Virus record (IMG/VR): IMGVR_UViG_3300023202_000247
Coordinates: 1 to 64,000 of that record
Length of the DNA stretch: 64,000 bases
Direction: 5' to 3' (one strand)
In this document: in pieces, positions 1-39,359 of the stretch
Position numbering within the stretch: the first letter of the stretch is position 1
Layout of the letters: each line of letters starts with the position of its first letter
The notes under the pieces: model-generated
What the model saw: only the letters and a program-made list of their open reading frames with translations
What the model was told of the DNA's origin: nothing
The model's database searches: none
Program-made: the position numbers and the translations under genes

Positions 1-630
1 AAATGTGCCGTATCCTTATTCTCTTATTTATTCTATCCAAATGTGCCGTATCCTTTAATTATGGTGGCCCCTTCTTTTATAAATGTGCCGTATCCTTATT
101 CTCTTATTTATTCTATCCAAATGTGTCGTATCCTTTAATTATGGTGGCCCCTTCTTTTATAAATGTGCCGTATCCTTATTCTCTTATTTATTCTATCCAA
201 ATGTGTCGTATCCTTTAATTATGGTGGCCCCTTCTTTTATAAATGTGCCGTATCCTTATTCTCTTATTTATTCTATCCAAATGTGTCGTATCCTTTAATT
301 ATGGTGGCCCCTTCTTTTATAAATGTGCCGTATCCTTATTCTCTTATTTATTCTATCCAAATGTGTCGTATCCTTTAATTATGGTGGCCCCTTCTTTTAT
401 AAATGTGCCGTATCCTTATTCTCTTATTTATTCTATCCAAATGTGTCGTATCCTTTAATTATGGTGGCCCCTTCTTTTATAAATGTGCCGTATCCTTATT
501 CTCTTATTTATTCTATCCAAATGTGCCGTATCCTTTAATTATGGTGGCCCCTTCTTTTATAAATGTGCCGTATCCTTATTCTCTTATTTATTCTATCCAA
601 ATGTGCCGTATCCTTTAATTATGGTGGCCC
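1..630. repeat. 80-bp tandem repeat, about 7.9 copies (cut by the window edge); each unit is a 38-bp plus a 42-bp subunit sharing the 17-bp core AAATGTGYCGTATCCTT
   Basis: Unit starts at 1, 81, 161 ... 561; second core at 39, 119 ... 599; only a C/T variant differs between copies. Confidence 0.98.
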
Positions 631-1075
631 CGCGGGTGCGCGCTGTCAACTCCCATACCCCCTTAGCTTTTCCACCTATCAACCCCTTCTGCGTTTCATC
701 GTGACACATTCTCCGAAACTGTTTCAACAATGAATCAAAAGAAAAACCAAAAACTAAAAAGCTTGCAGAAACTATTATTCTACTTTTCTTTTCCTTTTTC
801 GCAAAACATACACTTGGCATGCCAATTGCTACGCACGCTATGCGCGCAGGATAGGTAGGTTCTGACCCCATCTTAGACCGGTCGGCCGAATTAAAAAAAA
901 GATTGGAACCCTTAGGGTGCGGCCCCGTATTCAGTACAAGCCCGGCGAAAAACCGGGCCCCGGTTCTCTGAAAACCTAACGCATGTTCTGTCGCCGCACT
1001 TTCTAGGCTAGTCCCGGAAAGTTTCGCAGAAACCCGGAGTTACCGGCCTCTGCGGAAAAAAGTCAGCCTTACCGG

Positions 1076-1103
1076 TTGACGCGGCGGAACGCGTGATTAG
1101 GTT
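1076..1103 (+). promoter_or_regulatory. Putative sigma70-type promoter (TTGACG ... TAGGTT) at the start of the structured non-coding region
   Basis: TTGACG, 16-bp spacer, TAGGTT; resembles the promoter-like sequence at 57922-57950 (shared TTGACGC and CGTGATTAG). Confidence 0.45.
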
Positions 1104-1104
1104 C

Positions 1105-2350
1105 CTAATGGGTCGCAACGGCCCCCCGGCGAAAGCCGGGATGATCATTGAAAACAGAATACCTCGCAAGCGGTAAGCCCCGGCTTGCGAGTAGAATCCT
1201 AAAAGGTTCCCATTAGTTTGGGAGCGCAGATTAGGACGTAATTCACGGGGCGGCCGATCTTCGGCCTAATATGTTACCGCGCTCTAAGTGTGCCGTAAGG
1301 GCGCTTATCGCGGTAATGGTATCACACACCGGATCTATAGGGTCAATCAAGTTAACTTCGAACCCTCTGAACCGGCGGATCTTGTCACGCTGTGAAGTGT
1401 TGCACGGTCCCGGGGCGAAAGCTTTGGTTAAGTGGTATCGCAGTTTTACCGGGTAACCGGGACCACATAGTTTTCGTGACTATAGCCAACCTGCATTAGT
1501 AGGGAAACTGTAATGGTTAATAAGTGGCCTAACTCTGTGAATTACGCTAGTCCCGAATTGGGATAAAAGCTCTAATGTCTAGCTCGAGACACTAGTACTT
1601 AGGCGGCTCCTAGTCGTCCGAACCGTCAATCAGGTTTTACCTCGAACGGTTGTGCGCACCTGTCTACGCCGATACCAAGGTTTGACAGTGTTGCAAGGGT
1701 AATGCTCGGTTTTCTACCACTAGCTAGGATGTTACCAGCGGGCCATAGGCCCGACGCGTCACACGCAAACCGTGCGTATGCGCTTTGCTGACCCGTAAAA
1801 CGGCGGTTTTGAGCGCTAAGCCTTCCCCAAAGGCTAAAGTCGGTGGTAACAGTGGAATTCTAGTGGCACAATCGCTGCGAAGCTGCTTAATGTAGTTTTT
1901 GCGGATTGTCACTGATTAACGTGTATGAGTCTGTTAGAGTTTAAAAACGGCCCTACGTATATCGTAGCGGGGCAATCCCGGACAATTGTTCGTTAATTCC
2001 CATGCATAATGCGTGGTCGAGTTATCGATTCTAATCTGTAATGTTTCAATCGGGGAGAATATCTGAGGCAATGTAGGCAGATACACAAGTCTAGCAGCGG
2101 TTATCCGTTGCGTTACGGGCTTTCCCGGCCGTCTTTTTGACGATAACGTAACAATTACGTTATTCGCCGGATCGCGTTGTGATACGCGAGACGTCTATAA
2201 AGCTACGTTGGGCATAATCGTAGGTCATAATGACTTTGCGGTTATTGTAGTTTTTGCCAAAGGTGTTTTAGTAGATTGAAACGGGGGAAGCGGCAAGCGA
2301 GATAGATGAACCGTAGTTTTTACGGGTGTAGTGTGTCTCGCTTGCTTGCT
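1105..2350 (+). ncRNA. Candidate long structured RNA, family not identified
   Basis: No convincing ORF; many stems including CCCGGC-GAAA-GCCGGG (1125-1140), CTAATGGG/CCCATTAG (1105/1209), GGCCGA/TCGGCC (1252/1261), TTACCGCG/CGCGGTAA (1274/1309) and GCAAGCGAGA/TCTCGCTTGC (2293/2336). Confidence 0.4.
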
Positions 2351-2585
2351 ACCTTGGCGGTTTGATGCAGTAATTGTAGGAATCGCGAAGATAGCAAACG
2401 TGGGTGCGGGTGGTTTTCGGAAAGAAAGTTATGCGGAAAACGCAAAGTCTTTTCAGGGATCACCCGCGCACACCAATTCCTAAACCCCCTAAAACTTCAA
2501 AGTCTTTCAGGCGATCAATGTATAATTTTTCGCCCTAAACCCCCAAAACCAGGGCGCAATTGCGCCCAAAGCAAGCGAGGTAATA

Positions 2586-2759
2586 ATGACCGCACGCAAC
2601 GCACACGCACGCAACGCACGCACGGCCCACAAGCGCGAGACGCACGACAAGCGCTCGCACTACGGGTTTTTCAATAGAATGACCAACAAGCTCGAGCGCT
2701 CGAAGCGCTTCGAGCTTGTCTGGATTGACGACATTCCGTGCATGGTCCGCGTCAGCTGA
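2586..2759 (+). CDS. Small hypothetical protein, 57 aa (MTARNAHARNARTAHK...)
   Basis: GAGGT RBS upstream and TATAAT at 2521; below the ORF-track cutoff. Confidence 0.45.
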   Translation: MTARNAHARNARTAHKRETHDKRSHYGFFNRMTNKLERSKRFELVWIDDIPCMVRVS

Positions 2760-2899
2760 GCGCTGGGAATCTGATCCGAACGTTCGAGCATCCGTCGCAT
2801 CCCGCGTCCAGGCGCAAGTGCGTCTCGACGTTGGATGCCGCGGGCATTCGAGCCCGAGCCAACAACCGGGCGGTGATCCGTCCGGTTAAGGAGAACATC

Positions 2900-3163
2900 A
2901 TGGCAAAGAAGACCACGAAGAAGACCGCAAAGAAGACCACGAAGAAGACCACGAAGATGAACGCCAAGGGACCAACCCGCGTGCCGCGCAACCGTGGCGT
3001 GAAGGCCACCCCGGTGGCAGATCGCTTCGTGTGGAAGCGGGAGTGCCCGGTAGTGGCCTTTCGTAAGGGTGATTCGGTCGAAACGGCCGAGGAGCTTCTG
3101 CTCGAGCGCCCGAATCTCGAGCGCAAGTGGGTTCCGGCGGCCGACTGCCAGCTGTCCAGCTAG
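2900..3163 (+). CDS. Hypothetical protein with a Lys/Thr-rich histone-like N-terminus (MAKKTTKKTAKK...)
   Basis: AAGGAG RBS before the ATG at 2900, inside ORF 2738-3163. Confidence 0.7.
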   Translation: MAKKTTKKTAKKTTKKTTKMNAKGPTRVPRNRGVKATPVADRFVWKRECPVVAFRKGDSVETAEELLLERPNLERKWVPAADCQLSS

Positions 3164-3168
3164 GGGGC

Positions 3169-3454
3169 GAAGGTGCGCGGCTAGTCAAACGAGCCAGTAG
3201 GCTTTTCCCGTCAAGCCAAGTCCCGCCGGGTCTCGGCTCGGGCCGTAAGGTCCGGGCCGAGATCCGTTCAGAGTCCGCGCCGAGCCAATAGGCTGGCGCG
3301 GCCGTGAGCACGCATTGATGCGTGCGAGCGAAGGTTTCAATCCATTCTGGCTAATAATGCCAGGGTTCAAAGCCCGTGTAACAATCACGGGAGGAGTGTA
3401 TCTATGACCAACCAGCAAGCAATCCGTCACATGGGCTCGCCCGATCTCGAGGTA
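3169..3454 (+). repeat. Copy 1 of a 286-bp structured leader plus first 17 codons (MTNQQAIRHMGSPDLEV)
   Basis: Identical to 4824-5109; about eight consecutive hairpins ending next to an AGGAG RBS. Confidence 0.95.
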
Positions 3455-3754
3455 ATCGAACATGCCCTCGAAGTGCACGGCTCATACGCCGAGGCCGTAG
3501 CCGCGCTGGAGTCGTGGCACCACGGGATCCTGGTGTCCGCGGGTGGCGGGTCGTACAGAGCGATCTACTGCTGCGCGCCGGAGGATATGCCGAGCGTGCT
3601 GAGCCATGCCGATTCCCGTCGGCACGCTCCGATGCTCGTGACGATCGCCCACCGAGGAGCCGCGCCACAGCACTGGGCCCAGGATCCGTCCGGCCATCGT
3701 CGCGGCGGTAGCAGGGTGATCCGGGTGCAGCGCCCGGCCGAGGTGCAGTCATGA
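3404..3754 (+). CDS. Hypothetical protein, 116 aa
   Basis: RBS GGAGGAG; shares its N-terminus with 5059-5439; stop overlaps the next ATG. Confidence 0.75.
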   Translation: MTNQQAIRHMGSPDLEVIEHALEVHGSYAEAVAALESWHHGILVSAGGGSYRAIYCCAPEDMPSVLSHADSRRHAPMLVTIAHRGAAPQHWAQDPSGHRRGGSRVIRVQRPAEVQS

Positions 3755-3927
3755 GCGCCGACACCGCGATCGTAGTCACGCGCCACCTGGCGCTGGTAGA
3801 GTACCTGCGTGAGCAGGGCCTCATCGACGAGGACACCGACGTGGTGGCCCACGTCACCGATCCGGAGCAGATTCGGGGGCTGCACGTGATAGGGCCCGTC
3901 CCACTGCACCTCGCGGCGGATCAATAG
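3751..3927 (+). pseudogene. csx16: Truncated Csx16-like (ring-nuclease-related) protein, 58 aa
   Basis: IVVTRHLALVEYL...VVAHV...IRGLHVIGPVPLHLAA matches the Csx16-type motif (TRH.A..E ... HVIG.LP.HLAA); C-terminal part missing. Confidence 0.55.
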
Positions 3928-3961
3928 GCTGATCGGAGAGTGGGCGGACGCTCACGGGCTA

Positions 3962-4168
3962 GTGAAGTTCCGGGGGTTGCTCGGGCGCACGCACGCTCTC
4001 CCGGGAGACACCGCAGCAGCGCTCGAGCTGGTGCGACTGAGCAGACTGGATCCTCCGTACGGAGGTGAGATCCAGTGGGTGGGCATGCTCGATGGGATCC
4101 CGTGCGTGCGCCTCGGGATCAAGGTTGCCGGTCACGAGCTGTACGTGTCCTTCGTGCCGGAGCGCTGA
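3962..4168 (+). CDS. Hypothetical protein, possibly 5'-truncated
   Basis: ORF track; its 3' half is duplicated at 5529-5614. Confidence 0.5.
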   Translation: MKFRGLLGRTHALPGDTAAALELVRLSRLDPPYGGEIQWVGMLDGIPCVRLGIKVAGHELYVSFVPER

Positions 4169-4275
4169 CACCCCCATCCTGCCCCGGAGCATGCTCCGGG
4201 TCGGGAGTGGCGGATTCAGCCGCTGACTGGAGGATAGAGATGAAACGGTTCCGTTTGGACCCCGATACCGGCTTT
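4083..4275 (+). repeat. Copy 1 of a 193-bp module: gene end, hairpins, RBS and MKRFRLDPDTGF start
   Basis: Near-identical to 5529-5721; includes the palindrome CCCGGAGCATGCTCCGGG. Confidence 0.93.
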
Positions 4276-4494
4276 CGGCACGTGCCGGTGGTTCCTGCCG
4301 CGGGCTGGGACGAGCAAGATGAACACGTGATGCTGCGGTGGCCGTATGTAGGCTTGCTCGAGCGCTACGAGCGCGAGCCGGTACTCATCTGCTCCGCCGC
4401 GGTCCAAACGGGCCTGTGGACTCGTGGACATGGTTGGTTCGCGGCGGGTGTGTCTGTGCGCGGGTCGAGGCGCAGTCATGAGCGCCGACCTTGA
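4240..4494 (+). CDS. Hypothetical protein starting MKRFRLDPDTGF
   Basis: GGAGGA RBS; lies in frame within ORF 4075-4494. Confidence 0.6.
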   Translation: MKRFRLDPDTGFRHVPVVPAAGWDEQDEHVMLRWPYVGLLERYEREPVLICSAAVQTGLWTRGHGWFAAGVSVRGSRRSHERRP

Positions 4495-4585
4495 GCTACT
4501 GCGCGACAACTGAGCCCGCGGGGGCGGGGCCCGAGTATCTCGGACCTCGCACCGGCTGACTCAATCGAGCCGAAAGGAGTAGACC

Positions 4586-4825
4586 ATGTACGCAGTCATC
4601 CGCAACGCCACCCGCTACACCGGGACCCAAACATTCGCCGGCCACGTCGAGAGCCGGCACGACTCGCTCGAGGATGCGCTCCGCGCGGAGGCTCGCTCAC
4701 AGCGAGCCTGCACGCGCGCGAACGGCCCCCACACCTGGCTCGATCTGAGGGTCATCGAGATCGAGTGGGACGGCGGCGAGGCCGCCCGGGGCGAATCCCG
4801 GAGTAGCGTCGACCTCCTCGACTGA
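4586..4825 (+). CDS. Hypothetical protein, 79 aa
   Basis: AAAGGAG RBS; ORF track. Confidence 0.75.
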   Translation: MYAVIRNATRYTGTQTFAGHVESRHDSLEDALRAEARSQRACTRANGPHTWLDLRVIEIEWDGGEAARGESRSSVDLLD

Positions 4826-5109
4826 AGGTGCGCGGCTAGTCAAACGAGCCAGTAGGCTTTTCCCGTCAAGCCAAGTCCCGCCGGGTCTCGGCTCGGGCCG
4901 TAAGGTCCGGGCCGAGATCCGTTCAGAGTCCGCGCCGAGCCAATAGGCTGGCGCGGCCGTGAGCACGCATTGATGCGTGCGAGCGAAGGTTTCAATCCAT
5001 TCTGGCTAATAATGCCAGGGTTCAAAGCCCGTGTAACAATCACGGGAGGAGTGTATCTATGACCAACCAGCAAGCAATCCGTCACATGGGCTCGCCCGAT
5101 CTCGAGGTA
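4824..5109 (+). repeat. Copy 2 of the 286-bp structured leader module
   Basis: Identical to 3169-3454. Confidence 0.95.
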
Positions 5110-5439
5110 CATGATCTGGCTCGTTTTTGCGAGTCAAAGGTGAAGCGCGTTCGCAAGCGTGCGCTGCACTTGGCGAGCATGCACTTGGTCGAAACCCCGA
5201 AGTGGGGTGCGGCCGAACAGCTGCTAGCCCGGCGAGTGATCCGGGGAATCCAACGGAATCAGGGTGCAAGTCTATCCGACTTGTATGCTCCGGTTCCGGC
5301 CGCGTTCGTACGGGCGTGTGCGTGGGCGCTGGCGTGCAAAGGAAGCACGCGAGGCAAGCTCGAGGGCAAGTTTAGACGAGCCCTACGTGAGAGTCAGTAC
5401 GAGCAGAGCGCGGGGAAGTCCGCGCGGAAGGCTGCGTAA
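5059..5439 (+). CDS. Hypothetical protein, 126 aa
   Basis: Same RBS and N-terminus as 3404, unrelated body. Confidence 0.7.
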   Translation: MTNQQAIRHMGSPDLEVHDLARFCESKVKRVRKRALHLASMHLVETPKWGAAEQLLARRVIRGIQRNQGASLSDLYAPVPAAFVRACAWALACKGSTRGKLEGKFRRALRESQYEQSAGKSARKAA

Positions 5440-5528
5440 GATGGGCGGATTCAAAGGAGATATGATGATAGTCACACGCCACCTGGTCGAGGTGCAGTCG
5501 TGAGCCGGCAGGAGCATCCGCACGAGGT

Positions 5529-5721
5529 GCATGGTCGACGGGGCTCCGTGTGTGCGCCTCGGGATCAAGATCGCCGGTCACGAGCTGTACGTGTCCTTCG
5601 TGCCGGAGCGCTGACACCCCCATCCTGCCCCGGAGCATGCTCCGGGTCGGGAGTGGCGGATTCAGCCGCTGACTGGAGGATAGAGATGAAACGGTTCCGT
5701 TTGGACCCCGATACCGGCTTT
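5529..5721 (+). repeat. Copy 2 of the 193-bp module
   Basis: Near-identical to 4083-4275. Confidence 0.93.
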
Positions 5722-6021
5722 GATGCAATGTTGGATTACGATGACGGCGAGCGTTGTTGGCGCGTGTCGGCGGACCTGCTCGATGATATCGAGGCCGAAG
5801 TCGCCGAGCGCATCGCCGAGGCTGTGCGCACTCTGGCCGAGCCGCTGCAAGCAACCGAGTCCAGCGATGGGGAGTGGTACGACGTTGCCACCGTGAATGC
5901 GTGCGCCGCGTGCGGTGCCCCCACGCGCTACATGGGCTGGCTCCACGGCTACGTGCAGCCGCTCTGCCTGCGGGGCTGCCCCGTGCAGGGCTGTCGCCCG
6001 CCCACCATCGAGGAATCATGA
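5686..6021 (+). CDS. Hypothetical protein starting MKRFRLDPDTGF with a C-terminal CxxC...CxxxC
   Basis: RBS; stop overlaps the ATG at 6018. Confidence 0.65.
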   Translation: MKRFRLDPDTGFDAMLDYDDGERCWRVSADLLDDIEAEVAERIAEAVRTLAEPLQATESSDGEWYDVATVNACAACGAPTRYMGWLHGYVQPLCLRGCPVQGCRPPTIEES

Positions 6022-6155
6022 AAACAATAGTAGTAACGCGCCACCCGGCGCTAGTGGAGTACATTCACGAGATCGGCCTAGCCGGTCCGGACACTAAGGT
6101 TATTCCGCATGCACAGGCTGCGGAGCGCGGCGCAACCACCATCTATTGGGCATAA
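6018..6155 (+). pseudogene. csx16: Second truncated Csx16-like protein, 45 aa (MKTIVVTRHPALVEYIHEIGL...VIPHA)
   Basis: TRHPALVEY motif; similarity is lost after PHA. Confidence 0.55.
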
Positions 6156-6162
6156 GGAAGAA

Positions 6163-8901
6163 ATGAAGATCGAAGTTTCCACGGAAGAGCATGCACGCAT
6201 CATGAAGCACGTTGCCGAGGCCCGCGTGAAGGAGCGCCGAGTCCGCGAAGCTCGCGCACGTCGACGGGAAGCTCTTCGGAAGTACCCTGGCGCAACCATC
6301 GGCGAATTGCTCGAGGCGAAGCACGCGAACCAATAGGTCGAGCGGCAGTCGCCGGGCATGAGCATCGACCAAAGCTCATGCCCGGCCGCAGCAATTCAAC
6401 CAAAAGGAAACATGACGACTTTTGCATTCTGCATTCTGATTGCCGTGGTTGCGGGTCTCACCCGTATCAGCATCGCATCATGAGCAAGCACGCACGTAAA
6501 AGACCGGTTCGAGACGGATGGTGTCGGCAGGCGCGTCGCGAGATGCACACGCTCAATCCGGCATCGAACACCGGAGCCATCTGCGAAAAGGCACGTCTTT
6601 ATGGCATGCCGACTGGTAGTGGTATGTACCGACACGTGGTCGGAACGTCCACGACGTGCAGCAAAACTGGAAAGGAGCGGGTGGTCATTACCGCCCGTCC
6701 AGCCGGCGACCCGCCAGCAAGCAAGCTGGTTTTCGCCGATGAAACCACGGATGAACGTGAAAGCAATCGTCCGAGCCTGAGTCACGTGCTGGTCGGAGCC
6801 AAGCGAAAGGTTGTCAAGCGGCGTCGCAAGCGTCGCAAGATTCTGACACCCGCACAGCGCCGTGCGCGTCGGATTGTCGAGGTGTGACATGTGCAAGTTG
6901 AAGGAGTTCGAACAGGCAAACGGCGGCCACCGCTACGACGGTCGGTGTCGTTGTCAAACGTGCGTCGACTTCGAGTTTTACTTGAAGCTTTCGATCGCAA
7001 AAGAATCCGAGCAAAAGCGCACGAAGCGCGAAAACGGAAGTCTGCTACAATGTCTTTGAGCGATGATTCGCGGCGTCAGCTGAAGTACTCGCTCGGAGAA
7101 AAGCTCGGGTTGTTTCCGGCGAAGCCCGAGCCGACTCCGCAGGACGCTCGCTCGAAGGCGGAACTGTTCGAAATTCACAGGAACGGGTTGTAGCAAAGAT
7201 GCATAGGCAACAATGCGACAAGACCGTTGCCCGACACGCACTCACCTGCCAAGACGATATCTTCTACCATGATCAGGAGTCGATCCCGTGTAGCCTCGAA
7301 TATCACCACCGCCAGCACAACGTCCAATGCCCAGCATGCGGCGAGTGGATGTGTGAATGGTATCAGGTCAACTAACGGCGCTGGTCGCCCGGAGACAAGA
7401 TGCACAAGCAACAATCTATCAATATATGGATCCCAAAGCTGCGCAAGAATGCACCTAGTAACGCTAGCGGCATGCGCGGTATCCACACCCCGTATGCAAC
7501 GCGGAAGGAGGCGCTGTCGCATACGCACTGGGCCAACCAAGCTCCGTATGCGACGGCCAAGCGCGTGACCATCTGCGACGCACTCGGGCCCGACTGGTGT
7601 AGAGACGACGCCGGGCGGGTGCTCGCACAGATCGTGCTCGACGCCGAGGATTACGGCGACGTGCTGTACGAGGTGCACCGTGAAGCCGCGCGCCTCATTG
7701 ACGAAGGTCGCAACGTCGACGCGATCCGATTGTATCTCGGGCTGTAAGGAGAAAACATGAAAGAAAACATCAAGATCAGCAGTGACGCGGGTTGGGGCGA
7801 TCTGGAGATTGGCATCAACGTCTACAGTATCAAACAGTTGACACACTGTGCTAACTCTCTCGAGCATGCTGCTTGGAAGATTCGCCAGCGAATCGACAAT
7901 ATCTCGAAGGGAAACAAGAAGCTGGACCCATACATCTACGCGGAGATTCGCAAAGAGTGTGGCGGTACGGTGTTTCACCGACGTTCAGGAAACAAATTCT
8001 ATTACGAAAACCTGGACACAAAGACCTACATCGCCACACGAGTGCGTGCGAGCGCGTCGCTCGCTGACGAATCCGACGAATATATTTTGCAGCAAGTGGA
8101 AAACGCGATGTACCGCCTGAAAAAGCAGCGCCGAATTCTCGACGAAGAAACGGCCGCGATGCGTAGGGAAGGTATTGACGTTTCGTCACTTAAAAAAATC
8201 GCGATGCTCGAATTCAACAAAGCGGGGTTTTTCCAGAATCCCGAGGATGTTGACAAACTGGTGGACGAGTACCTTTCGACGCCACTTCGAGACATGCACG
8301 TTATCGTGGCGGAAGCAGTGGAAACCCTGCGTGAACGTGGCGAGCTGTATAAAATGTCCAGTGTCTCTAAGGTTTGCAAGTACCGACCCGCCGTCGTCGT
8401 CGTCGGCGAAGACTACGCCGTTGCCAAGATCGCAATCATCAAAGAAGTCCGCCGGATCGCAAACTGTGATTTGCGTACGGCCAAGGATGCAACCGAGCGT
8501 TACATCACAGAAACGAAACTAGGTTAATGCGATGAATAACTCGGAGTGTAGGTTGTGCGGGCATGTGCATCCCGACGACTCCAAGCAGTGTCCTTTGCGT
8601 TGTTCTGCGTGTGGAGGGGAGTTGGATAGCACGGGAAACTGTGCTTTGTACTGTGTCGACGATTCTTACGGTGTTGACCGCGAAAGCGTGAAAAAGGAGG
8701 AATACGATGAATAACCTGAAAAACAGATTCGAGCGAGACATGGCGAAGGGTAGGCTGGCTCGGGCGCGCATTGCGCTGAACGATGCCGAGCGTCGTCAGA
8801 GTCTCGGAGTCGGCAATCCCTTCACGGTCGGCATGGAAGTCGAGGCGGCACGTGCGCGTCTCGGCCGGTGTCGCCGACAGCTTGCGGATCTGAGCCGATA
8901 A
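6163..8901 (+). other. Run of small hypothetical genes (about 6163-6336, 6378-6887, 7400-7747, 7757-8527, 8532-8714, 8707-8901)
   Basis: Closely packed + strand ORFs with RBSs; no family recognised. Confidence 0.6.
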
Positions 8902-8924
8902 CGTACCGCCGAAAGGAAAAGACG

Positions 8925-9518
8925 ATGGAACATCTCATGCTGATTAGCACGCCGGGCTGCGGTCGTACGATGTACGCACGGTCACTGGCCGAAGAACCAT
9001 CTGCCACGAAGTTTTTCATCGCTCGTGAGGGTGCAACGTCTACGTTGCATCGCATGGCGGGATTGCCTCCCCGAAAGGTGCTCGACGTTCCGTTCCGTGC
9101 TCCGTATCACACAGTGAGCGTGACTGGAATAACCGGCTCGCTCATCAACGGATACAATGTCCGTCCGGGTGAATTGTCACTGGCACACGGCGGCATCCTT
9201 TTGCTGGACGAGGCAGCTGAGTTTTCACGCACTGTGCTGGACCACGTGCTCACCGTACTACGTACGGGTGAAGTGGAATTGTATGGTTACAGAGGAACGC
9301 GAGTAATTCTGCCGGCCCAATTCAGGTTGGTAATTTCTACCAATCCTTGTCCGTGCGCATTCCGCACCAGCAACGTTCGCAAGTGTGTGTGTAGCGACCA
9401 ACAGTGCAAGCGGTACATGGATCGACTATCAGCTTTTCGAAACCATTGTCGGGTTGTCGAGGAGCCGGAGATTCGAGAGCGGGTTACAGCTATCAGAGGT
9501 AAAGCAAGCAATGAGTAA
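8925..9518 (+). CDS. YifB/ComM-like (Mg-chelatase family) AAA+ ATPase domain, N-terminally truncated, altered Walker A
   Basis: HLMLISTPGCGRT, PFRAPYHTVS, RPGELSLAHGGILLLDE, STNPCPC...CVC motifs. Confidence 0.85.
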   Translation: MEHLMLISTPGCGRTMYARSLAEEPSATKFFIAREGATSTLHRMAGLPPRKVLDVPFRAPYHTVSVTGITGSLINGYNVRPGELSLAHGGILLLDEAAEFSRTVLDHVLTVLRTGEVELYGYRGTRVILPAQFRLVISTNPCPCAFRTSNVRKCVCSDQQCKRYMDRLSAFRNHCRVVEEPEIRERVTAIRGKASNE

Positions 9519-12068
9519 AACAGTAGAGGGGTCGACGTGTCGGCCCGAGCGCGAGCACTTGCAGCCCGGTGTCGTGATGCGATTCCTTTGCCTGCCGTTC
9601 GCGGATTGCGTGATTGTCAAGGTCGAAAACGAAACGGTTTACTTTGCCCGTCCGTATCTATACGTTAGCGGTGCGGAGTCGATTCCGGTTCCGTTGACTG
9701 GCGTCGAACGATTCGAAGCAAGTATCGATCGTGTGCTCGAAGACGATGGCATGTTCTCCACCGTGATGTGCTACGACGGTCCGAAGAGGTTTCTGACATG
9801 ACATACATCGTACGTTTCACGCAAGAGATGGCAGTCGAGGCGGCGGATGAATCCGCCGCCGAGAAGCGAGCCGAAGCAATTGTGGATACGATGGGTACGA
9901 CCGAATTGCTCACACACATTCATTACGGACACATCAAAACCATCAACCCGAACGATGAATTGAAAAAGCTTCGAACGCTCGTGGATGAGCTCCGTCGTCG
10001 CGCTCGAATCCATGCGAGTCGAGGTTACGAAGAGTCGGCAAACCTTCTCGAAAACTTCATCACGGGAAAAGAAAGATGAGTGACGAATTCTACAAGCATT
10101 CTGGTGTGAGTCCGGATCTGGTTCTAGTTGCCGTGTATCAATACGACGATCTGGAACACGGCATGGTAACCGAGCGGCAAGAAAAGACGGTGGAGCAATG
10201 GGCGCACATGCTTGGCCCGACCGTTTTCGGTTCGCTCGAAACGCTTCACGATATCTGTGACGCAATCTGGTCGGACGAGTGTGTTTGGGTGGGCACGGCC
10301 GAGCAGCATGAGGCGATGGAGGCTGACGAGGAACGCCGCCGGCTCGAGAAGCTAGCCGGAAAGATTGCGAAGGCTGCAAAGGTTGGCGTCGATTCTCTCG
10401 CATTTCTGCGGGTGGTCGACGAGCACATTCAGCGGGCCGAGCGAGAACGAGCCGACTGGAACAGCGGCGAGATTCGCGCCGAGCAGTGGGCCGCGTGCAT
10501 GCATTCGGGCGCTGGTCAGAGTGCATACTTCGACGACTTGAATTTCGAGAACGGTAGGTATGGCTCATAACTGAACGACCTAGAAGCAATCAAGAATTGG
10601 TTGGCCGAGCAGTGTCCGTTGCTGTTCGCTCAATACAACGAGCAAAAGTCATGAGCGTCAATGTTCATTGCCGAACCAATCTCGACGTCGAGCACGAGTG
10701 TTGGCCTGAAACGTTGTGTGTTCGTCCGATGGTGGGAGACTACATCGAGTCCAAAACTCGACGAAAAGTCGACGGATACGATCGGCGACTTCGCTTGGTG
10801 GTATGTCAAGTGGAAGTCCACGAAGACTGCTGTCAAGTTGAGCTTCACCTTCCACCGGGCGAAACCATCAAACAATTCACGTCCCGCTATCGTCGCAACT
10901 ATCTCGGACGAGCCTGGTAGCGTGGAAATCGTCAAACAGAAAACCCGCCGCGGCGCTCCGTCGCGGTGGGAGTATCGAGACTACGAGATCGAATCGGCCA
11001 AGCCATACAGATACACGGTGTACGATCCCGACGGTGAGCTGCTGGACACATACATGAGTCTAGATGAAGCGGCTGACGCAATTGACATGAGTCTAGATGA
11101 AGCAGCTGACGCAATTGAGTTGCTGGACGAAGCAATCGAAGAACGGAGTTAAACATGGGAATCAAAGACGCAATGCCGGAGCGCTGGGGAGACCGGCACG
11201 AACTAACCTGTACTCGTCACTTGAACCGCCGCATGGCGGTGCGCGAGTTTCGCAAAACAAAGTGTCTCACGCTTCGAGAAGAGTGTTTTGATGACGGTGA
11301 GATCACGTTTTGTGAGACGCTAACGCTCGAGAATGATGGTAGCATTACGCTCGAGTCGTACGGTTGCCACGAGGATGAATGCTTCAAACGGAAGGTAAGC
11401 GTAAAAGAATTTCGAAAACTAATCAGTCGTCACTTCGATCGTCACGCTCGTGTATGGGTAAATGCCTACGCTGTGAACCGAATCTGCTTCAGCCCGGCTG
11501 AGGGAGGGTGTTACGCTGACATTGGCGAAGCCGTTGCCAGCGCTCCGGTGTTGGACAGGGACGGTCGACCGATGGAAGTTGCAGCGCACATGTTCGAGGC
11601 GTTGCGTGACGAATACGACGATGGTCGTAATCGTTTCAGTGTGCTCGGCGGGGCGGACTTGATTATCCGTTTCGAAAAGGAAGCGGCCGAAAATTGGCCG
11701 CAGGGACCGCTAAGGTACGAATGAAAAAGAACAAGTTCAGGAACAAGTTGCACGTGGCGCTTCGCGACTTCAACAAAGAGCAGGCGCAGAAACTGTCGGA
11801 CGAGATCCACAAGGCAGAAGAGGATGGTTACGAAACTATCCCTGTCGGAAGACTCTTTGTGGGAAACGTTGACCAATCGCATATGCAGTTGAGCAAACAA
11901 ACGCTCGAGCTGCTGGGTCAGTATGACTCGGCGGCTCGGGCGGCTCATACGAACATGGAAAGCCTCCGACAGTTTCAAAAGCCGTCGGTTGGGTTGTTCG
12001 TATGTGCATGGTTCGATCGAAATAACGGTGTTTACTCCGCATTGGAGTGGAAGCAAAAAAGGATTTAA
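9511..12068 (+). other. Run of hypothetical genes (9511-9801, 9798-10079, 10076-10570, 10649-10920, ...-11152, 11155-11724, 11721-12068)
   Basis: ATGA overlaps and close spacing. Confidence 0.65.
11052..11118. repeat. 33-bp tandem duplication encoding MSLDEAADAI twice
   Basis: Direct inspection. Confidence 0.9.
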
Positions 12069-12070
12069 AG

Positions 12071-13192
12071 ATGGCAAAGAAAAAGAAGAAGTTCGACGCT
12101 CGCGAGAAGGTGGCCGGCTACATTCTCGAGGCGATGGAAAAGCGTCTCAAGATTGTCGAGGTTGTCAATGTGCTTCGGCATCTGCACGGAGTGCCGGAGC
12201 GCGAGCAGCCCGAGGCTTTCTGGAAGAAGCCTTGGAACGCTGGTCTTCTGCCGCGCAATGCGGAGCGCGGTAACCAGTATCGTGGCGGCAATCTGTTTGC
12301 ACTGAGTTTGCTCGGCTCCACGCCGTTCTGGCTCACCTACAAGCAGGCAACCGAGCATGGTGGTGTGGTCGAGACGGGTGAGCACGGAACGCCCATCCTG
12401 TTCACGCAATTCAAGGAATACGAGAAGAAGGATGGTTCCAAGTATACCTCCTTTTTCCGTCGTTACTACTTGGTGTTCAACGTTTCGCAGTGTCGCGCTG
12501 CGACTGCCGACGATGTGGCCAAGTGGCGCAAGCATGCGGCCGAGGGTTTCGGTCGTGTGAAGAACACGGCGGTGCGTGCTCTCGAGGCTGCGAAGGCAAA
12601 GGACAGCGAAAGCGACGAGAAGGTTGCCGAGCGGATGGCAAAGAAGTGGGCGCGATTCGCGAAGAAGTTGGAAAAGCAGCAAGCGGAAGCAACCAAGCTC
12701 CGCGCAGATGTGGAGCCGATTGCTCGTGCCCAAGCCATTCACGACGGTTACGAAAACGGTCCGAAGGTGACTCACAAGGGTGAACGTGCATTCTACCGGC
12801 CCAGCAGTGACTCCATCACGCTGCCAAAGCCGGAGAAGTTCGAGACTCAGGAAGCGTATCATGCGACGCGCTTTCACGAGGAGGTTCATTCGAGCGGACA
12901 CAAGAGCCGGTTGAACCGTGAGACACTGGAAAAGACTGGTTCCTTCGGTGACCACGAATACTCGAAGGAGGAACTGGTTGCCGAATTCGGTGCAGCAATG
13001 CTTTGCAGCGAGGCTGGCATCGAGACGACTCGGGACAATTCGGTCGAGTACCTGATGAATTGGCTCGGCAAGCTCCGAAACGATCCGGTCATGCTGTACG
13101 ACGCAGCGCAGCAAGCCCAACGGGCTGTCGACCACGTTCTCGGAATCACTCACGAAAATGAGAGTGAGGACGAGAGCGAGAAGGCAGCTTGA
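12071..13192 (+). CDS. ardC: ArdC-like ssDNA-binding anti-restriction protein with zincin-like domain
   Basis: YRGGN, WLTYKQA, YLVFNVSQ, AFYRPSSDSITLP, HEEVHSSGH, YSKEELVAE motifs. Confidence 0.9.
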   Translation: MAKKKKKFDAREKVAGYILEAMEKRLKIVEVVNVLRHLHGVPEREQPEAFWKKPWNAGLLPRNAERGNQYRGGNLFALSLLGSTPFWLTYKQATEHGGVVETGEHGTPILFTQFKEYEKKDGSKYTSFFRRYYLVFNVSQCRAATADDVAKWRKHAAEGFGRVKNTAVRALEAAKAKDSESDEKVAERMAKKWARFAKKLEKQQAEATKLRADVEPIARAQAIHDGYENGPKVTHKGERAFYRPSSDSITLPKPEKFETQEAYHATRFHEEVHSSGHKSRLNRETLEKTGSFGDHEYSKEELVAEFGAAMLCSEAGIETTRDNSVEYLMNWLGKLRNDPVMLYDAAQQAQRAVDHVLGITHENESEDESEKAA

Positions 13193-26647: not shown

Positions 26648-27354
26648 GCGATAGAAACAAGCGTATCGTTGAATCGATGCAAGAGATGTTGTCCAACCAT
26701 GTGCTTATACGTGAGCATGTGTGGAATGATGACAAGCAGGCAAGCTGGGTGCTGGCTCGTGAGGGTCCGAGCGAACCCATCGAGGTAATTGCTGGCGTTG
26801 GAAATACCATCCTGATTCATGGCAACTGGCCGTTGATTCGGCTATGCTGTGAGGGTGGCAGCTGCTTCGAACGGCTCATGTGTGTAGCACATGCACGAGC
26901 CGATAAGCTCATGACGTATGCATCGTTGGGTGGTACCGAGTATGATGCTTACAATGCGAGCGAAGCAGCTGAAAAGCTCATGGAACTACGCGGTGATTAC
27001 AACGCTGATCATCAGTATGATCTTGGCAAGTTGATGGATGAAGCTATCAATCATGTTGAGATTGAAACGTCATTGTACGATTACCTACATCATAACAACT
27101 ACAGCTTCGAGCACGATACTTTTCGAGTAGTTCATGATAATCTGATTCAAGGTCAGGTAATCCTGAATCACTTGGTCAAGATATTGATTCGTCATCGTGA
27201 AGATGGTCCAGCTATTGAACATGCAGATGGATATAAATCTTGGTGGATAAATGGTACCAAACTGACAGAAGAAGAGTTTAACAATCGTTACTCATCTTGT
27301 ACCAGCAAGATTGTAGAGATTGACGGAAAACGTTACAAACTAGAAGAGGTTTGA
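26644..27354 (+). CDS. Chimeric protein: unrelated N-terminus fused to the HREDGPA-family C-terminus
   Basis: Switch at about 27190 (LIR|HREDGPA...KRYKLEEV). Confidence 0.8.
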   Translation: MSDRNKRIVESMQEMLSNHVLIREHVWNDDKQASWVLAREGPSEPIEVIAGVGNTILIHGNWPLIRLCCEGGSCFERLMCVAHARADKLMTYASLGGTEYDAYNASEAAEKLMELRGDYNADHQYDLGKLMDEAINHVEIETSLYDYLHHNNYSFEHDTFRVVHDNLIQGQVILNHLVKILIRHREDGPAIEHADGYKSWWINGTKLTEEEFNNRYSSCTSKIVEIDGKRYKLEEV

Positions 27355-27357
27355 AAA

Positions 27358-27864
27358 ATGGAAAAACTTCGAGTAGAGATTAATGATTGTGGTGACAAAA
27401 GGTATTACAAGTGGAATACGTATGAACTGCATAATCCATATGGTCCAGCAATTGAATTTGCATATGGATCTAAATCTTGGTATCTAAACGGTAAACTTCA
27501 TCGTGAAGATGGTCCAGCAATTGAATGGACAGATGGACATAAAGAGTGGTGGATAAACGGTAAAGTTCATCGTGAGGATGGTCCAGCAATTGAACATGTA
27601 GATGGAGCTAAAGAGTGGTGGATAAACGGTAAACGTCACCGAGAAGATGGCCCAGCTGTTGAATACGCAAATGGATCTAAATTTTGGTATGTAAACAGTA
27701 AACGTCATCGTGAAGATGGTCCAGCAATTGAATGGGCAGATGGACATAAAGAGTGGTATCTAAACGGTGTCGAATTGACAGAAAAAGAGTTCAACAATCG
27801 TCACTCTTGCGCTGGTAAAGTTGTAGAGATTGACGGAAAACGTTACAAGCTAGAAGAGGTTTGA
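27358..27864 (+). CDS. HREDGPA 23-aa-repeat protein, 5 units
   Basis: Conserved MEKLRVEI N-cap and VEIDGKRYKLEEV C-cap. Confidence 0.92.
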   Translation: MEKLRVEINDCGDKRYYKWNTYELHNPYGPAIEFAYGSKSWYLNGKLHREDGPAIEWTDGHKEWWINGKVHREDGPAIEHVDGAKEWWINGKRHREDGPAVEYANGSKFWYVNSKRHREDGPAIEWADGHKEWYLNGVELTEKEFNNRHSCAGKVVEIDGKRYKLEEV

Positions 27865-27867
27865 AAA

Positions 27868-28236
27868 ATGGAAAAGCTTCGAGTAGAGATTAAAGATTGT
27901 GGTACCAAGAGATACTACAAGTGGGATACGGATGAACTGCATAATCCGTATGGTCCAGCTGTTGAATATGCAGATGGAGATAAAGTTTGGTATCTAAACG
28001 GTAAACGTCATCGTGAAGATGGTCCAGCTGTTGAAGATGCAGATGGAGATAAATCTTGGTGGATAAACGGTAAACGTCACCGAGAAGATGGTCCAGCAAT
28101 TGAATATGCAGATGGAGATAAAGAATGGTGGGTAAACGGTGTCGAATTGACAGAAAAAGAGTTTCACAATCGTCACTCTTGTACCAGCAAGATTGTAGAG
28201 ATTGATGGAAAACGTTACAAACTAGAAGAGGTTTGA
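27868..28236 (+). CDS. HREDGPA repeat protein, 3 units
   Basis: Paralog of 27358. Confidence 0.92.
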   Translation: MEKLRVEIKDCGTKRYYKWDTDELHNPYGPAVEYADGDKVWYLNGKRHREDGPAVEDADGDKSWWINGKRHREDGPAIEYADGDKEWWVNGVELTEKEFHNRHSCTSKIVEIDGKRYKLEEV

Positions 28237-28239
28237 AAA

Positions 28240-28677
28240 ATGGAAAAACTTCGAGTAGAGATTGACCATCATGGTAACAATAGATACTACAAGTGGGATA
28301 CGGATGAACTGCATAATCCATATGGTCCAGCTGTTGAATATGCAGATGGAGATAAAGTTTGGTATCTAAACGGTAAACGTCATCGTGAAGCTGGTCCAGC
28401 TGTTGAATGGGAAGATGGAGATAAAGAGTGGTGGATAAATGGTAAACGTCACCGAGAAAATGGTCCAGCAATTGAACATGTAGATGGATCTAAATTTTGG
28501 TATATAAACAATAAACTTCATCGTGAAGATGGTCCAGCAATTGAATATGCAGATGGAGATAAAGAATGGTGGGTAAACGGTGTCGAATTGACAGAAAAAG
28601 AGTTTCACAATCGTCACTCTTATGCTGGCAAAGTTGTAGAGATTGACGGAAAACGTTACAAACTAGAAGAGGTTTGA
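28240..28677 (+). CDS. HREDGPA repeat protein, 4 units
   Basis: Paralog of 27358. Confidence 0.92.
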   Translation: MEKLRVEIDHHGNNRYYKWDTDELHNPYGPAVEYADGDKVWYLNGKRHREAGPAVEWEDGDKEWWINGKRHRENGPAIEHVDGSKFWYINNKLHREDGPAIEYADGDKEWWVNGVELTEKEFHNRHSYAGKVVEIDGKRYKLEEV

Positions 28678-28680
28678 AAT

Positions 28681-28980
28681 ATGGAAAAGCTTCGAGTAGA
28701 GATTAATGATTGTGGTGACAAGAGGTATTACAAGTGGGATACGGATGAGTATCATAATCCATATGGTCCTGCTATTGAACGTGCAAATGGAACTAAATGT
28801 TGGTATGTAAACGATAAGCGTCATCGTGAAGATGGCCCTGCTATTGAATTTGCAAATGGACATAAAGAGTGGTATCTAAACGGTGTCGAATTGACAGAAA
28901 AAGAGTTCAACAATCGTCACTATTGCGCTGGTAAAGTTGTAGAGATTGACGGAAAACGCTATAAACTAGAAGAGGTTTGA
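28681..28980 (+). CDS. HREDGPA repeat protein, 2 units
   Basis: Paralog of 27358. Confidence 0.92.
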   Translation: MEKLRVEINDCGDKRYYKWDTDEYHNPYGPAIERANGTKCWYVNDKRHREDGPAIEFANGHKEWYLNGVELTEKEFNNRHYCAGKVVEIDGKRYKLEEV

Positions 28981-38573: not shown

Positions 38574-39359
38574 ATGGAAAAGTTACGAGTAGAGATTAAT
38601 TGTCGTGGTAACAAGATGTATTACAAGTGGGATACGGATGAACTGCATAATCCGTATGGTCCAGCTGTTGAATACGCAAATGGAACTAAATATTGGTATC
38701 TAAACGGTAAACATCACAGAGATGATGGCCCAGCTGTTGAATATGCAAATGGAGCTAAAGAGTGGTGGATAAACGATAAGCGTCATCGTGAGGATGGTCC
38801 AGCTGTTGAAGGTGCAAATGGACATAAAGAGTGGTATCTAAACAATAAACTTCATCGTGAAGATGGTCCAGCTGTTGAAGGTGCAAATGGACATAAAGAT
38901 TGGTATCTAAATAGTAAACGTCACCGAGAAGATGGTCCAGCTGTTGAATATGCAAATGGATATAAATCTTGGTGGATAAATGGTAAACGTCACCGAGAAG
39001 ATGGTCCAGCTATTGAATATGCAGATGGATATAAAGATTGGTATGTAAACGGCAAGCTTCATCGTGAAAATGGTCCAGCTGTTGAATTTGCAAATGGACA
39101 TAAAGAATGGTATCTAAACGGTAAACTTCATCGTAAAGATGGTCCAGCAATTGAAAATGCAAATGGACGTAAAGAGTGGTGGGTAAACGGAAAGCTTCAT
39201 CGTGAGGATGGTCCAGCTGTTGAATATGCAAATGGAGATAAATGTTGGTATGTAAATGGTACCAAACTGACAGAAGAAGAGTTCAACAGTCGTCACTCAT
39301 CTTGTACCAGCAAGATTGTTAAGATTGACGGAAAACGCTACAAGTTAGAAGAGATTTGA
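38574..39359 (+). CDS. HREDGPA repeat protein, 9 units
   Basis: Same caps and 23-aa period as array 1. Confidence 0.92.
   Translation: MEKLRVEINCRGNKMYYKWDTDELHNPYGPAVEYANGTKYWYLNGKHHRDDGPAVEYANGAKEWWINDKRHREDGPAVEGANGHKEWYLNNKLHREDGPAVEGANGHKDWYLNSKRHREDGPAVEYANGYKSWWINGKRHREDGPAIEYADGYKDWYVNGKLHRENGPAVEFANGHKEWYLNGKLHRKDGPAIENANGRKEWWVNGKLHREDGPAVEYANGDKCWYVNGTKLTEEEFNSRHSSCTSKIVKIDGKRYKLEEI

Follow-up and report, generated by a model that had tools for sequence, protein, structure and literature searches.

The analysed window comprises positions 1 to 64,000 (64,000 nt) of the IMG/VR record IMGVR_UViG_3300023202_000247, a 321,461-bp contig (about 75% complete) of a jumbo phage from Namib salt-pan mats. 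Between a likely replication origin and the first rightward genes lies a conserved region of about 1.35 kb that codes for no protein but appears to fold into an elaborate multi-domain RNA matching no known RNA family. The features of the locus, in window coordinates, are as follows.

1..631 (no strand assigned): iteron-like array at the strand-switch point, with 7.9 copies of an 80-bp tandem repeat found with TRF; each unit carries two copies of a 15-mer (AAATGTGYCGTATCC), 16 in all. Flanking context, not part of the RNA.
640..870 (no strand assigned): AT-rich block, 87-96% identical between the two lineages described below, with a leftward promoter-like site (TTGCGA-16-TAGAAT, 804 to 777 on the - strand).
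1076..1103 (+): promoter-like block P2 (TTGACG, 16-nt spacer, TAGGTT), with the predicted start near 1110.
1110..2473 (+): the candidate structured RNA as a whole, about 1,360 nt in this strain; the 5' end is inferred from the promoter, and the 3' end was placed only between about 2396 and 2473.
1111..1225 (+): 5' hairpin cluster (1111-1123; GAAA-capped 1125-1140; an 11-bp hairpin at 1163-1191; 1206-1225), 93% identical to lineage B; z -4.2 in the window lineage and -3.1 in B.
1237..1546 (+): subdomain I, closed by helix 1237-1248/1535-1546 (1 compensatory and 2 single consistent changes) and containing helix 1318-1325/1432-1439 (1 compensatory, 3 single) and GNRA hairpins at 1295, 1392, 1417 and 1453; lineage B carries here an extra 18-nt duplicated GAAA-hairpin unit and a 25-nt insertion.
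1567..1942 (+): subdomain II, closed by a 20-bp two-part helix (1567-1592 with 1921-1942) that is invariant between lineages and so has no covariation evidence; inner helices 1630-1645, 1653-1695, 1730-1736/1845-1851 and 1819-1835 carry 6 compensatory changes.
1883..1991 (+): most conserved core, 109 nt with a single substitution (at 1920) between lineages, including conserved unpaired strands (1910-1919, 1943-1952, 1981-1989) and hairpins 1953-1967 and 1968-1980 (GCAA-containing loop).
2043..2282 (+): domain III, 86 pairs in 13 helices, closed by a long interrupted helix (2043-2078 with 2193-2282); the best-supported domain.
2292..2473 (+): three long 3' hairpins (2292-2346, 2347-2396 and 2400-2473), with -38.4 kcal/mol and z -6.0 for 2396-2476; a 36-nt apical hairpin insertion after 2328 is present in strain L031 and in lineage B but absent here.
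2443..2548 (+): a unit duplicated 55 nt apart (three copies of its core in lineage B) that carries the small palindrome AAAGTCTTT, plus a conserved -10 TATAAT at 2519-2524; a candidate separate, operator-controlled promoter (P3) for the first genes, inferred only.
2552..2567 (+): GC-rich palindromic hairpin (GGGCGC AATT GCGCCC) just upstream of the first ribosome-binding site, with one compensatory change in lineage B.
2586..2759 (+): first gene, a 57-aa arginine/lysine-rich protein with no family, conserved with the RNA in both lineages (76-80% identity).
2900..3163 (+): second gene, an 87-aa protein with a lysine-rich N-terminal tail and no family, conserved with the RNA in both lineages (72-77% identity).

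Coding capacity was examined first. Window 872-2737 contains no ORF of 70 aa or more on either strand and is the largest such gap in the whole contig (1,866 nt; the next internal gap is 542 nt). TAA, TAG and TGA each occur 4-20 times in each of the six frames of 632-2585, and substitutions against the relative show no codon periodicity (58/64/56, P 0.75), so that coding under the standard code or a reassigned stop was rejected. The 92-aa ORF called at 593-871(-) is probably spurious and conserved only because the DNA is, as its only relative is 89% identical, more than the real neighbouring proteins. The initial annotation had described about 2 kb without a credible ORF, GNRA-capped hairpins and nested longer-range stems starting behind a sigma70-like promoter, and this observation was confirmed; its limits of 1076-2350 are slightly short on the 3' side, conserved helices continuing to about 2473.

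Relatives were sought by several routes. A blastn search of 640-2600 against GenBank phages gave no match. Searches of IMG/VR for relatives of neighbouring proteins found none with the AAA protein alone, the 116-aa protein or the 379-aa AAA protein of lineage B. An alignment of AAA relatives found 16 distant loci (34-42% identity), none of which carries the RNA by nhmmer, blastn or the covariance model. Exact-pattern scans with conserved RNA cores gave 0 hits in two scans of viral contigs, 0 hits and then 2 chance hits in two scans of metagenome contigs, and 0 hits in one scan of genome contigs; cluster look-ups gave no further variants. One diverged relative was recovered, lineage B (Logan contig L035), with 72-80% protein identity in the neighbouring genes; it also occurs in runs SRR28370465/67, SRR28027657 and SRR28089850, and its sequence was obtained from runs other than SRR28370465. 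Only these two lineages exist in the data searched. Lineage B has the same architecture: leftward genes, repeats, about 2.3 kb without genes, then the 81-aa homologue. The copy number and sequence of the tandem repeats differ in the sister strain L013 and in lineage B, and several assemblies break there. Searches of genome contigs with the spore-photoproduct-lyase-like protein to infer the host found nothing.

The noncoding stretch is 87-97% identical between the lineages (per 100 nt), against 67-68% at third codon positions of the adjacent genes. Identity rises from 0.67-0.76 upstream of P2 to 0.93 just downstream of it. All three strain-level SNP positions fall in unpaired bases. Indels are whole apical hairpins, and loops swap to GNRA; for example, UUUUU becomes GUAA at 2134 and AUA becomes GUAA at 1745.

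Folding energy no better than that of shuffled sequence had been named in advance as grounds for rejecting a structured RNA, and the comparison favoured structure. From the promoter block to about 2473 the + strand MFE was -500.6 kcal/mol, against a mean of -419.5 +/- 9.5 in dinucleotide-preserving shuffles (z -8.5), and the - strand gave -400.0 kcal/mol (z -3.5). The corresponding values for lineage B were -583.1 (z about -15.7) and -456.6 (z -5.3). Sliding 200-nt windows gave z of -2 to -6 for most of 900-2600, although other intergenic stretches of this early region (3200-3400 and 4800-5000) are also very hairpin-rich, and strong local folding is partly a regional habit. GNRA loops GAAA 1131, GUGA 1392, GAAA 1417 and GUAA 1453 have stems of 4 bp or more, that is 4 against 1.3 expected in dinucleotide shuffles (P 0.04), with none on the - strand; GUAA 1295 and GCAA 1972 appear in the consensus fold. 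The enrichment is real but modest.

Covariation, the other criterion set beforehand, was assessed on a structure predicted from the window sequence alone. Fourteen pairs changed on both sides and stayed paired (permutation null 2.5) and 2 double changes were broken; broken pairs totalled 29 against 64 in the null (P<2e-4). Single changes were kept 37:27 on the + strand and 17:48 on the - strand (Fisher P 3.4e-4), so that wobble-compatible changes favour the + strand; the 27 of 64 single changes that break pairs indicate that the single-sequence MFE model is wrong in places. A coding control showed no such excess. The consensus fold has 19 compensatory and 36 single-consistent pairs in 68 helices, and 64 G.U pairs out of 462. 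In domain III, covariance model R1 and pair counts gave 100% of cells paired and 8 pairs changed on both sides (shuffles 2.7 +/- 1.4, 0 of 500; slid controls 0-2); its helix 2043-2071 with 2254-2282, a predicted long-range nested stem, carries 4 compensatory changes. With two lineages every covariation event lies on one branch, which precluded an R-scape-type test. The two longest-range helices (1226-1236/2029-2039 and 1567-1592/1921-1942) are invariant and thus unsupported by covariation, and an 11-bp match at that range could be chance. At least three domains of 240-380 nt are real units.

The window copy of the promoter is only 8/12 to consensus and fell below the threshold of the scan. The block is conserved, however, and is duplicated in L013 and in lineage B, which carry a second, upstream copy (P1, TTGACA-16-TAGATT) missing from the window strain; the lineage B copy is 10/12 and was called. 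Similar TTGACA-N16/17-TAGATT sites recur on the gene strand elsewhere in the genome, and no phage RNA polymerase was found in the contig. The host is unknown, and these observations leave the assignment as a sigma70-type promoter undecided. No + strand terminator-like site, as would mark the 3' end of an independent ncRNA gene, was found between 1110 and 2586; a classic terminator at 2430-2458 was rejected, and the weak candidate in lineage B (hairpin plus CUUUUC) is buried in a longer stem.

No Rfam 15 family matched, these including rRNA, tmRNA, RNase P, 6S, group I/II introns, riboswitches and the large ornate classes presumed to be included, GOLLD, ROOL, OLE, HEARO, raiA and phi29 pRNA. 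There were 0 matches at gathering score over the whole 64-kb window, and at E up to 10 only noise appeared (17-25 bits against thresholds of 36-110) in the window lineage and in lineage B, with no shared hit except a 25-nt CRISPR-repeat-like chance match outside the RNA. A retroelement template of the retron, DGR or reverse-transcriptase-associated ncRNA array kind was rejected, as no RVT_1 match was found in the contig, although this absence is not absolute given its incompleteness. A CRISPR array was rejected because the 80-bp units have no spacers, and a DnaA box in the AT-rich block because the one 8/9 match, read by eye, is not conserved in lineage B. The 57-aa and 87-aa proteins gave no hit in Pfam (including at E up to 10), PHROGs or the ESM Atlas; their AlphaFold models were poor (pLDDT 67 and 47) and no fold search was run.

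Window ~1110 to ~2400-2470 (+ strand) is therefore best explained as the template of a new, kilobase-scale (about 1.3-1.4 kb), multi-domain structured RNA in a divergent control region. The initial annotation's proposal of an undescribed large ncRNA, or several smaller ones, behind a promoter is supported. In the proposed mechanism, host RNA polymerase would start at P2 (P1 plus P2 in relatives) and make this RNA first; it would fold into the 5' cluster, subdomains I and II, domain III and the three 3' hairpins, with selection acting on the fold and the almost invariant core and not on any reading frame. As a working guess, it would act as a folded RNA in its own right, a stable scaffold or decoy made at the onset of infection, and may work with the two small basic proteins encoded immediately downstream. 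The absence of coding, conservation above neutral, excess folding energy, strand asymmetry and compensatory changes were shown, whereas the promoter and 5' end, one transcript rather than several, trans action and the protein partners are inferences, function and partners resting on position and co-conservation only. No expression data were examined, and the existence, ends and abundance of a transcript, a further test named at the outset, were not addressed; BioProject PRJNA943124, from Namib salt-pan mats, holds DNA only. Confidence in a conserved + strand RNA structure is high, a single large RNA acting in trans is tentative, and the explanation as a whole is held as somewhat more likely than not.

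The strongest alternative, considered possible but unlikely, is a giant cis-acting leader, in which the stretch would be the 5' untranslated part of the rightward early operon mRNA and would stabilise the message or control transcription elongation or translation (an anti-termination or RNase-shield type of role). In its favour, strand and orientation match the genes, no intrinsic terminator precedes the first start codon at 2586 in either lineage, conservation runs without a break up to the ribosome-binding site, and later intergenic spacers of the operon are packed with very stable hairpins. However, a 1.4-kb leader with multi-way junctions and a near-invariant core would to our knowledge be without precedent in size, the conserved TATAAT flanked by repeated small palindromes looks like a separate, regulated promoter for the genes, and the last conserved hairpin does not cover the ribosome-binding site.

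Less likely still is an origin-associated transcript that would prime or activate DNA replication, for example through a persistent RNA-DNA hybrid as with plasmid ColE1 RNA II, its fold being needed for that step. The RNA sits beside the iteron-like repeats and AT-rich block, at the exact point where gene orientation and GC skew change sign (positive over all 321 kb to the right, negative in the 8 kb to the left in lineage B). The origin is itself an inference, which leaves location at an origin undecided; moreover, transcription runs away from the repeats and AT-rich block, gene orientation alone can explain the skew switch, and no antisense regulator or RNase H-type site can be recognised.

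A string of independent local elements (several small RNAs, processing or stability hairpins, or protein-bound DNA palindromes at an origin or control region) without global architecture was also considered improbable. Most predicted pairs are local (364 of 465 span under 100 nt), the two longest-range helices lack covariation, GNRA enrichment is modest and indels are modular hairpins. Against this, helices spanning 120-310 nt carry compensatory changes (4 in 2043-2071/2254-2282, and 1 each in 1237-1248/1535-1546, 1318-1325/1432-1439 and 1730-1736/1845-1851), wobble-compatible changes favour the + strand, which DNA palindromes would not do, and no internal promoter or terminator was found on the + strand. 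A decayed or recoded gene, or functionless sequence folding as a by-product of composition, is suggested only by GC content (about 50% against a genome mean of 40.6%, with 60-70% in the neighbouring early region) and is largely refuted by the stop codons, the lack of codon periodicity, conservation above neighbouring genes, the dinucleotide-preserving shuffles and the compensatory changes, which are absent from the coding control.

Several systems were compared. GOLLD and ROOL, large 'ornate' structured RNAs often carried by phages and prophages, form homo-oligomeric cages by cryo-EM (PMC12286853); like them the element is phage-borne, long and non-coding, with many helices and multi-way junctions, GNRA-type loops, strongly conserved unpaired nucleotides and unknown function. 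It fits the large 'ornate' structured ncRNAs as a descriptive kind in its long stretch without coding capacity, its conservation above neutral sites of neighbouring genes and its multi-helix structure supported by compensatory changes, the last from only two lineages; a discrete, stable transcript was not examined. It is roughly 1.35-1.45 kb, against about 800 nt for GOLLD and about 580 nt for ROOL, and sits at the head of an early operon beside a putative origin rather than near tRNA genes; oligomerisation was not assayed. OLE RNA is likewise a large conserved structured RNA with small partner proteins (Oap) encoded nearby, but there is no homology, the partnership here is only a positional inference, and OLE is cellular (extremophilic Firmicutes). 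ColE1 RNA II is a structured replication primer; like it the element would be a structured transcript made from a promoter next to an origin-like region, whose fold matters more than its sequence, but it is more than twice as long, is transcribed away from the repeats and AT-rich block and has no recognisable RNA I-like antisense partner, and the origin is not demonstrated. The phi29 pRNA, a packaging RNA encoded at the genome's left end and made from an early promoter, is similarly a phage structural RNA at the very start of the early region, but is about 170 nt and matches its own Rfam family, and no link to packaging is evident here. Candidate structured RNAs mined comparatively from the same IMG/VR collection (PMC10690425) are 30-151 nt long and needed at least three distinct IMG/VR regions; this element is ten times longer and showed no second copy there in four scans (two RNA-core patterns and two neighbouring proteins), so that screen could not have found it.

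A bolder reading is not excluded, though it is considered unlikely: the element would be the founding member of a new class of kilobase-scale, autonomously folding phage RNA, the largest structured RNA known from a phage outside rRNA-like or intron classes. It would act as an RNA machine or assembly (a ribozyme, a multimeric RNA cage, or the core of an RNP with the two adjacent basic proteins), made as the very first product of infection to take over or shield against the host.

Large structured RNAs of unknown function are rare and have repeatedly revealed new biology, as with the ribosome, RNase P, group II introns and, recently, the cage-forming GOLLD/ROOL RNAs. At about 1.35-1.45 kb this element would be among the largest non-ribosomal, non-intron structured RNAs proposed in any bacterial or phage genome, and it shows that surveys limited to short motifs or to families with many members miss such elements. 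It is directly testable, because the sequence folds strongly and the domains are delimited. In the proposed view it would be the first thing transcribed rightward from the central control and origin-like region of a 320-kb phage, and it is more conserved than the proteins around it, so the phage evidently needs it.

The 321,461-bp IMG/VR virus record that begins with the 64-kb window (GC 40.6%, about 75% complete by CheckV) comes from JGI sample 3300023202, one of the Namib Desert salt-pan metagenomes (bioRxiv 10.1101/2022.02.18.481119). Every credible gene in the contig is on the + strand, and the host was not identified. Pfam searches showed phage-type functions, namely an rIIA-like ATPase, Ku, ArdC, a UvrD-like helicase and a PARG-like protein, and the nearest GenBank phage protein hit was only 37% identical. 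No phage RNA polymerase was found in the contig; a weak sigma70 region-2-like match (21.7 bits, below the cut-off) was seen at genome 309545-309685 in a 224-aa frame, a possible phage sigma factor for later genes. Elsewhere in the window, two arrays of genes at 27190-28884 and 38656-40986 are built from 69-bp (23-aa) repeats of the MORN type, some of which hold in-frame stops between adjacent short ORFs, and tandem repeats of 213 bp and 66 bp at 44758-45230 fill a 515-nt ORF-free gap, another possible regulatory or RNA element.

The stretch without credible ORFs described in the initial annotation was confirmed. From 872 to 2737 there is no ORF of 70 aa or more on either strand, which is the largest such gap in the contig (1,866 nt; the next is 542 nt), and all three stop codons occur many times in all six frames. 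The first genes with good ribosome-binding sites start at 2586 (57 aa), 2900 (87 aa) and 3404. The GNRA-capped hairpins that had been pointed out are present, with 4 having stems of 4 bp or more against 1.3 expected (P 0.04) and none on the opposite strand. The promoter-like site that had been named is TTGACG-16-TAGGTT at 1076-1103, which is too weak for the threshold of the promoter scan.

RNA folding of 1076-2350 gave −500.6 kcal/mol on the + strand and −400.0 kcal/mol on the − strand. Folding no better than that of dinucleotide-shuffled controls had been specified in advance as an outcome that would count against a structured RNA; the shuffles gave −419.5 ± 9.5 (z −8.5) for the + strand and −357.4 ± 12.2 (z −3.5) for the − strand. 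MFE models of more than 1 kb are imperfect, and the full-length z-scores rest on 14–20 shuffles. In 200-nt windows, the + strand z was −2 to −6 across most of 900-2600, whereas coding sequence at 3400-4700 was near 0. The intergenic spacers at 3200-3400 and 4800-5000 have exceptionally stable hairpin clusters (z −7.2 and −6.4 on the + strand), including a long GUAA-capped hairpin, and may be processing or stability elements of the early operon or further small structured RNAs. The 100 kcal/mol difference between the strands fits the 64 G.U pairs among 462 in the consensus fold.

DNA searches in GenBank phages and IMG/VR returned no match. Word searches with the small neighbouring proteins found one diverged lineage (lineage B) in Logan assemblies, through a 57-aa protein at 80% identity (P0025), an 81-aa protein at 72% (P0022) and a product of the ORF at 593-871(−) at 89% (P0026), and the DNA was taken from their contigs. 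Contig L035 (11,070 bp) spans the whole region, and L034 and L036 are identical pieces of it. Near-identical sister strains of the window lineage (L013/L030, L031, L032 and L033) were also recovered. The 92-aa ORF at 593-871(−), called by the JGI pipeline, overlaps an AT-rich conserved block, and its only relative in about 15 billion proteins is the 89% identical product, more conserved than the real neighbouring proteins; the conservation is probably at the DNA level and the ORF is probably spurious. The widest-spread marker found for this phage group is a small (197-aa) Mg-chelatase/ComM-like AAA protein at 8925-9518, conserved at 59–76% identity in several short metagenome contigs (relatives P0002-P0009).

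In these contigs the genome continues to the left of the repeats with genes on the opposite strand, and the start of the window is therefore an assembly break and not a genome end. GC skew is positive over all 321 kb and negative in the 8 kb to the left in lineage B. The locus is thus a divergent control region, and plausibly an origin. From left to right it contains the repeat array, the AT-rich block, which is 87–96% identical between lineages and holds a leftward promoter-like site, the rightward promoter block, the structured stretch and then the early genes. The array at 1-631 consists of 7.9 copies of an 80-bp tandem repeat, each with two copies of a 15-mer (16 copies in the window), and is iteron-like; its counterparts lie in L013 (reverse) and at L035:2757-3847. 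Repeat number and sequence differ between strains and lineages, several independent assemblies break here, and the array lies exactly where gene orientation and GC skew switch sign, which makes it a candidate replication origin. Strain L013 and lineage B carry a second, better promoter copy (TTGACA-16-TAGATT, 10/12) about 130 nt upstream, and the hairpin between the two copies differs by a compensatory A-U to G-C change. The same TTGACA-N16/17-TAGATT pattern recurs on the gene strand at 71.8, 81.8 and 116.0 kb (genome 71822, 81752 and 115961, + strand), where sites of the form TTGACA-N16/17-(G)TTAGATT resemble the promoter block in front of the RNA, a possible phage promoter class with a TAGATT −10 element.

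On the right of the locus, the first rightward early genes (window 2600-13000) are 60–70% GC, and the content falls steadily to about 40% by 70 kb, whereas the leftward genes in lineage B are 35–40% GC. No explanation was found for this gradient; contiguity is supported by several independent assemblies. The early region also holds a variable cassette at 3164-5058, a stretch of roughly 1.9 kb that is absent from sister strains L013 and L031 and replaced by other small genes in L003, in which a Cas_VVA1548-like ORF that is 58 aa in the window (3751-3927) is 174 aa.

The window lineage and lineage B align over window 599-3154. Identity per 100 nt is 0.67–0.76 just upstream of the promoter, jumps to 0.93 at 1100-1199 and stays at 0.84–0.97 to the first gene, except in one indel-rich window. 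The two adjacent genes are 76–78% identical at the nucleotide level and only 67–68% at third codon positions. A 109-nt core (1883-1991) has one substitution, and substitutions show no three-base periodicity (58/64/56). The noncoding stretch is therefore under stronger constraint than the proteins beside it.

Covariation had likewise been set beforehand as a test of the RNA reading. To avoid circularity, the MFE structure was predicted from the window sequence alone (1100-2420), and the effect of the lineage B substitutions on it was then counted.

Table. Pairs of the single-sequence MFE structure, classified by the lineage B substitutions.
Unchanged: 369
Single change, pair kept: 37
Single change, pair broken: 27
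Double change, pair kept: 14
Double change, pair broken: 2

Permuting substitutions among columns of the same base (5,000 times) gave 2.5 ± 1.5 kept double changes and about 64 broken pairs, against 29 broken pairs observed, and neither observed value was reached once. All these comparisons rest on only two lineages. The same procedure on the − strand gave 17 kept and 48 broken single changes (Fisher P 3.4e-4 for the strand contrast), which points to RNA on the + strand rather than DNA palindromes. The same test on the adjacent coding stretch 2586-3154 showed no excess, with 2 kept double changes against 1.9 expected (P 0.58). RNAalifold on both sequences gave 465 pairs in 68 helices, with 19 compensatory and 36 single-consistent pairs. 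For domain III (2043-2282), a covariance model was built and pairs were counted, giving 86 pairs in 13 helices, all paired in all sequences; eight pairs changed on both sides, against 2.7 ± 1.4 in shuffles (0 of 500) and 0–2 with slid partners. The three strain-level SNP positions all lie in unpaired bases. Length differences are whole apical hairpins, namely a 36-nt module after 2328, shared by strain L031 and lineage B, and 18-, 25- and 17-nt modules in lineage B, and two loops change to GNRA in lineage B. The lineage B homologue folds at −583.1 kcal/mol (z about −15.7 with 14 shuffles), against −456.6 kcal/mol on the other strand.

The consensus model of the + strand was read as follows.
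1111-1225, +, 5′ hairpin cluster
1226-1236/2029-2039, +, predicted closing helix, invariant and so unsupported
1237-1546, +, subdomain I
1567-1942, +, subdomain II
1953-2028, +, two small conserved hairpins and a 15-bp hairpin
2043-2282, +, domain III
2292-2473, +, three long hairpins

No intrinsic terminator was found on the + strand before the first gene in either lineage. Between 2443 and 2548 lies a repeated unit with a small palindrome (AAAGTCTTT; two copies in the window lineage, three in B) and a conserved TATAAT at 2519-2524, and the 3′ end of the RNA was therefore placed only loosely, at 2396-2473. The proposal in the initial annotation of an undescribed large noncoding RNA, or several smaller ones, was supported by these data. 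Helices spanning 120–310 nt with compensatory changes show that at least three units of 240–380 nt are real, while their union in one molecule is not shown, and there is no transcript evidence, no reads having been examined; that the repeated unit at 2443-2548 is a possible separate, operator-controlled promoter for the genes is inference.

No Rfam 15 model reached its threshold anywhere in the window, and permissive scans of both lineages gave only noise. There is no reverse transcriptase in the contig, which is about 75% complete. In kind, the element most resembles the phage-associated ornate RNAs GOLLD and ROOL (PMC12286853), with which it shares no detectable homology and than which it is considerably longer. 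The large IMG/VR motif survey covers only 30–151-nt motifs seen in three or more regions, and no paper describing this element was found.

Of the other readings considered, a giant cis-acting leader of the early operon is the main rival, possible but less likely than the reading preferred here; an origin-associated primer or activator transcript is doubtful, and a string of independent local elements is the least likely of the three. Function was not assayed. If the element is a structured RNA, the reading tentatively adopted is that of an early, host-polymerase-made RNA that would act through its fold as a scaffold or decoy, possibly with the two co-conserved small basic proteins.
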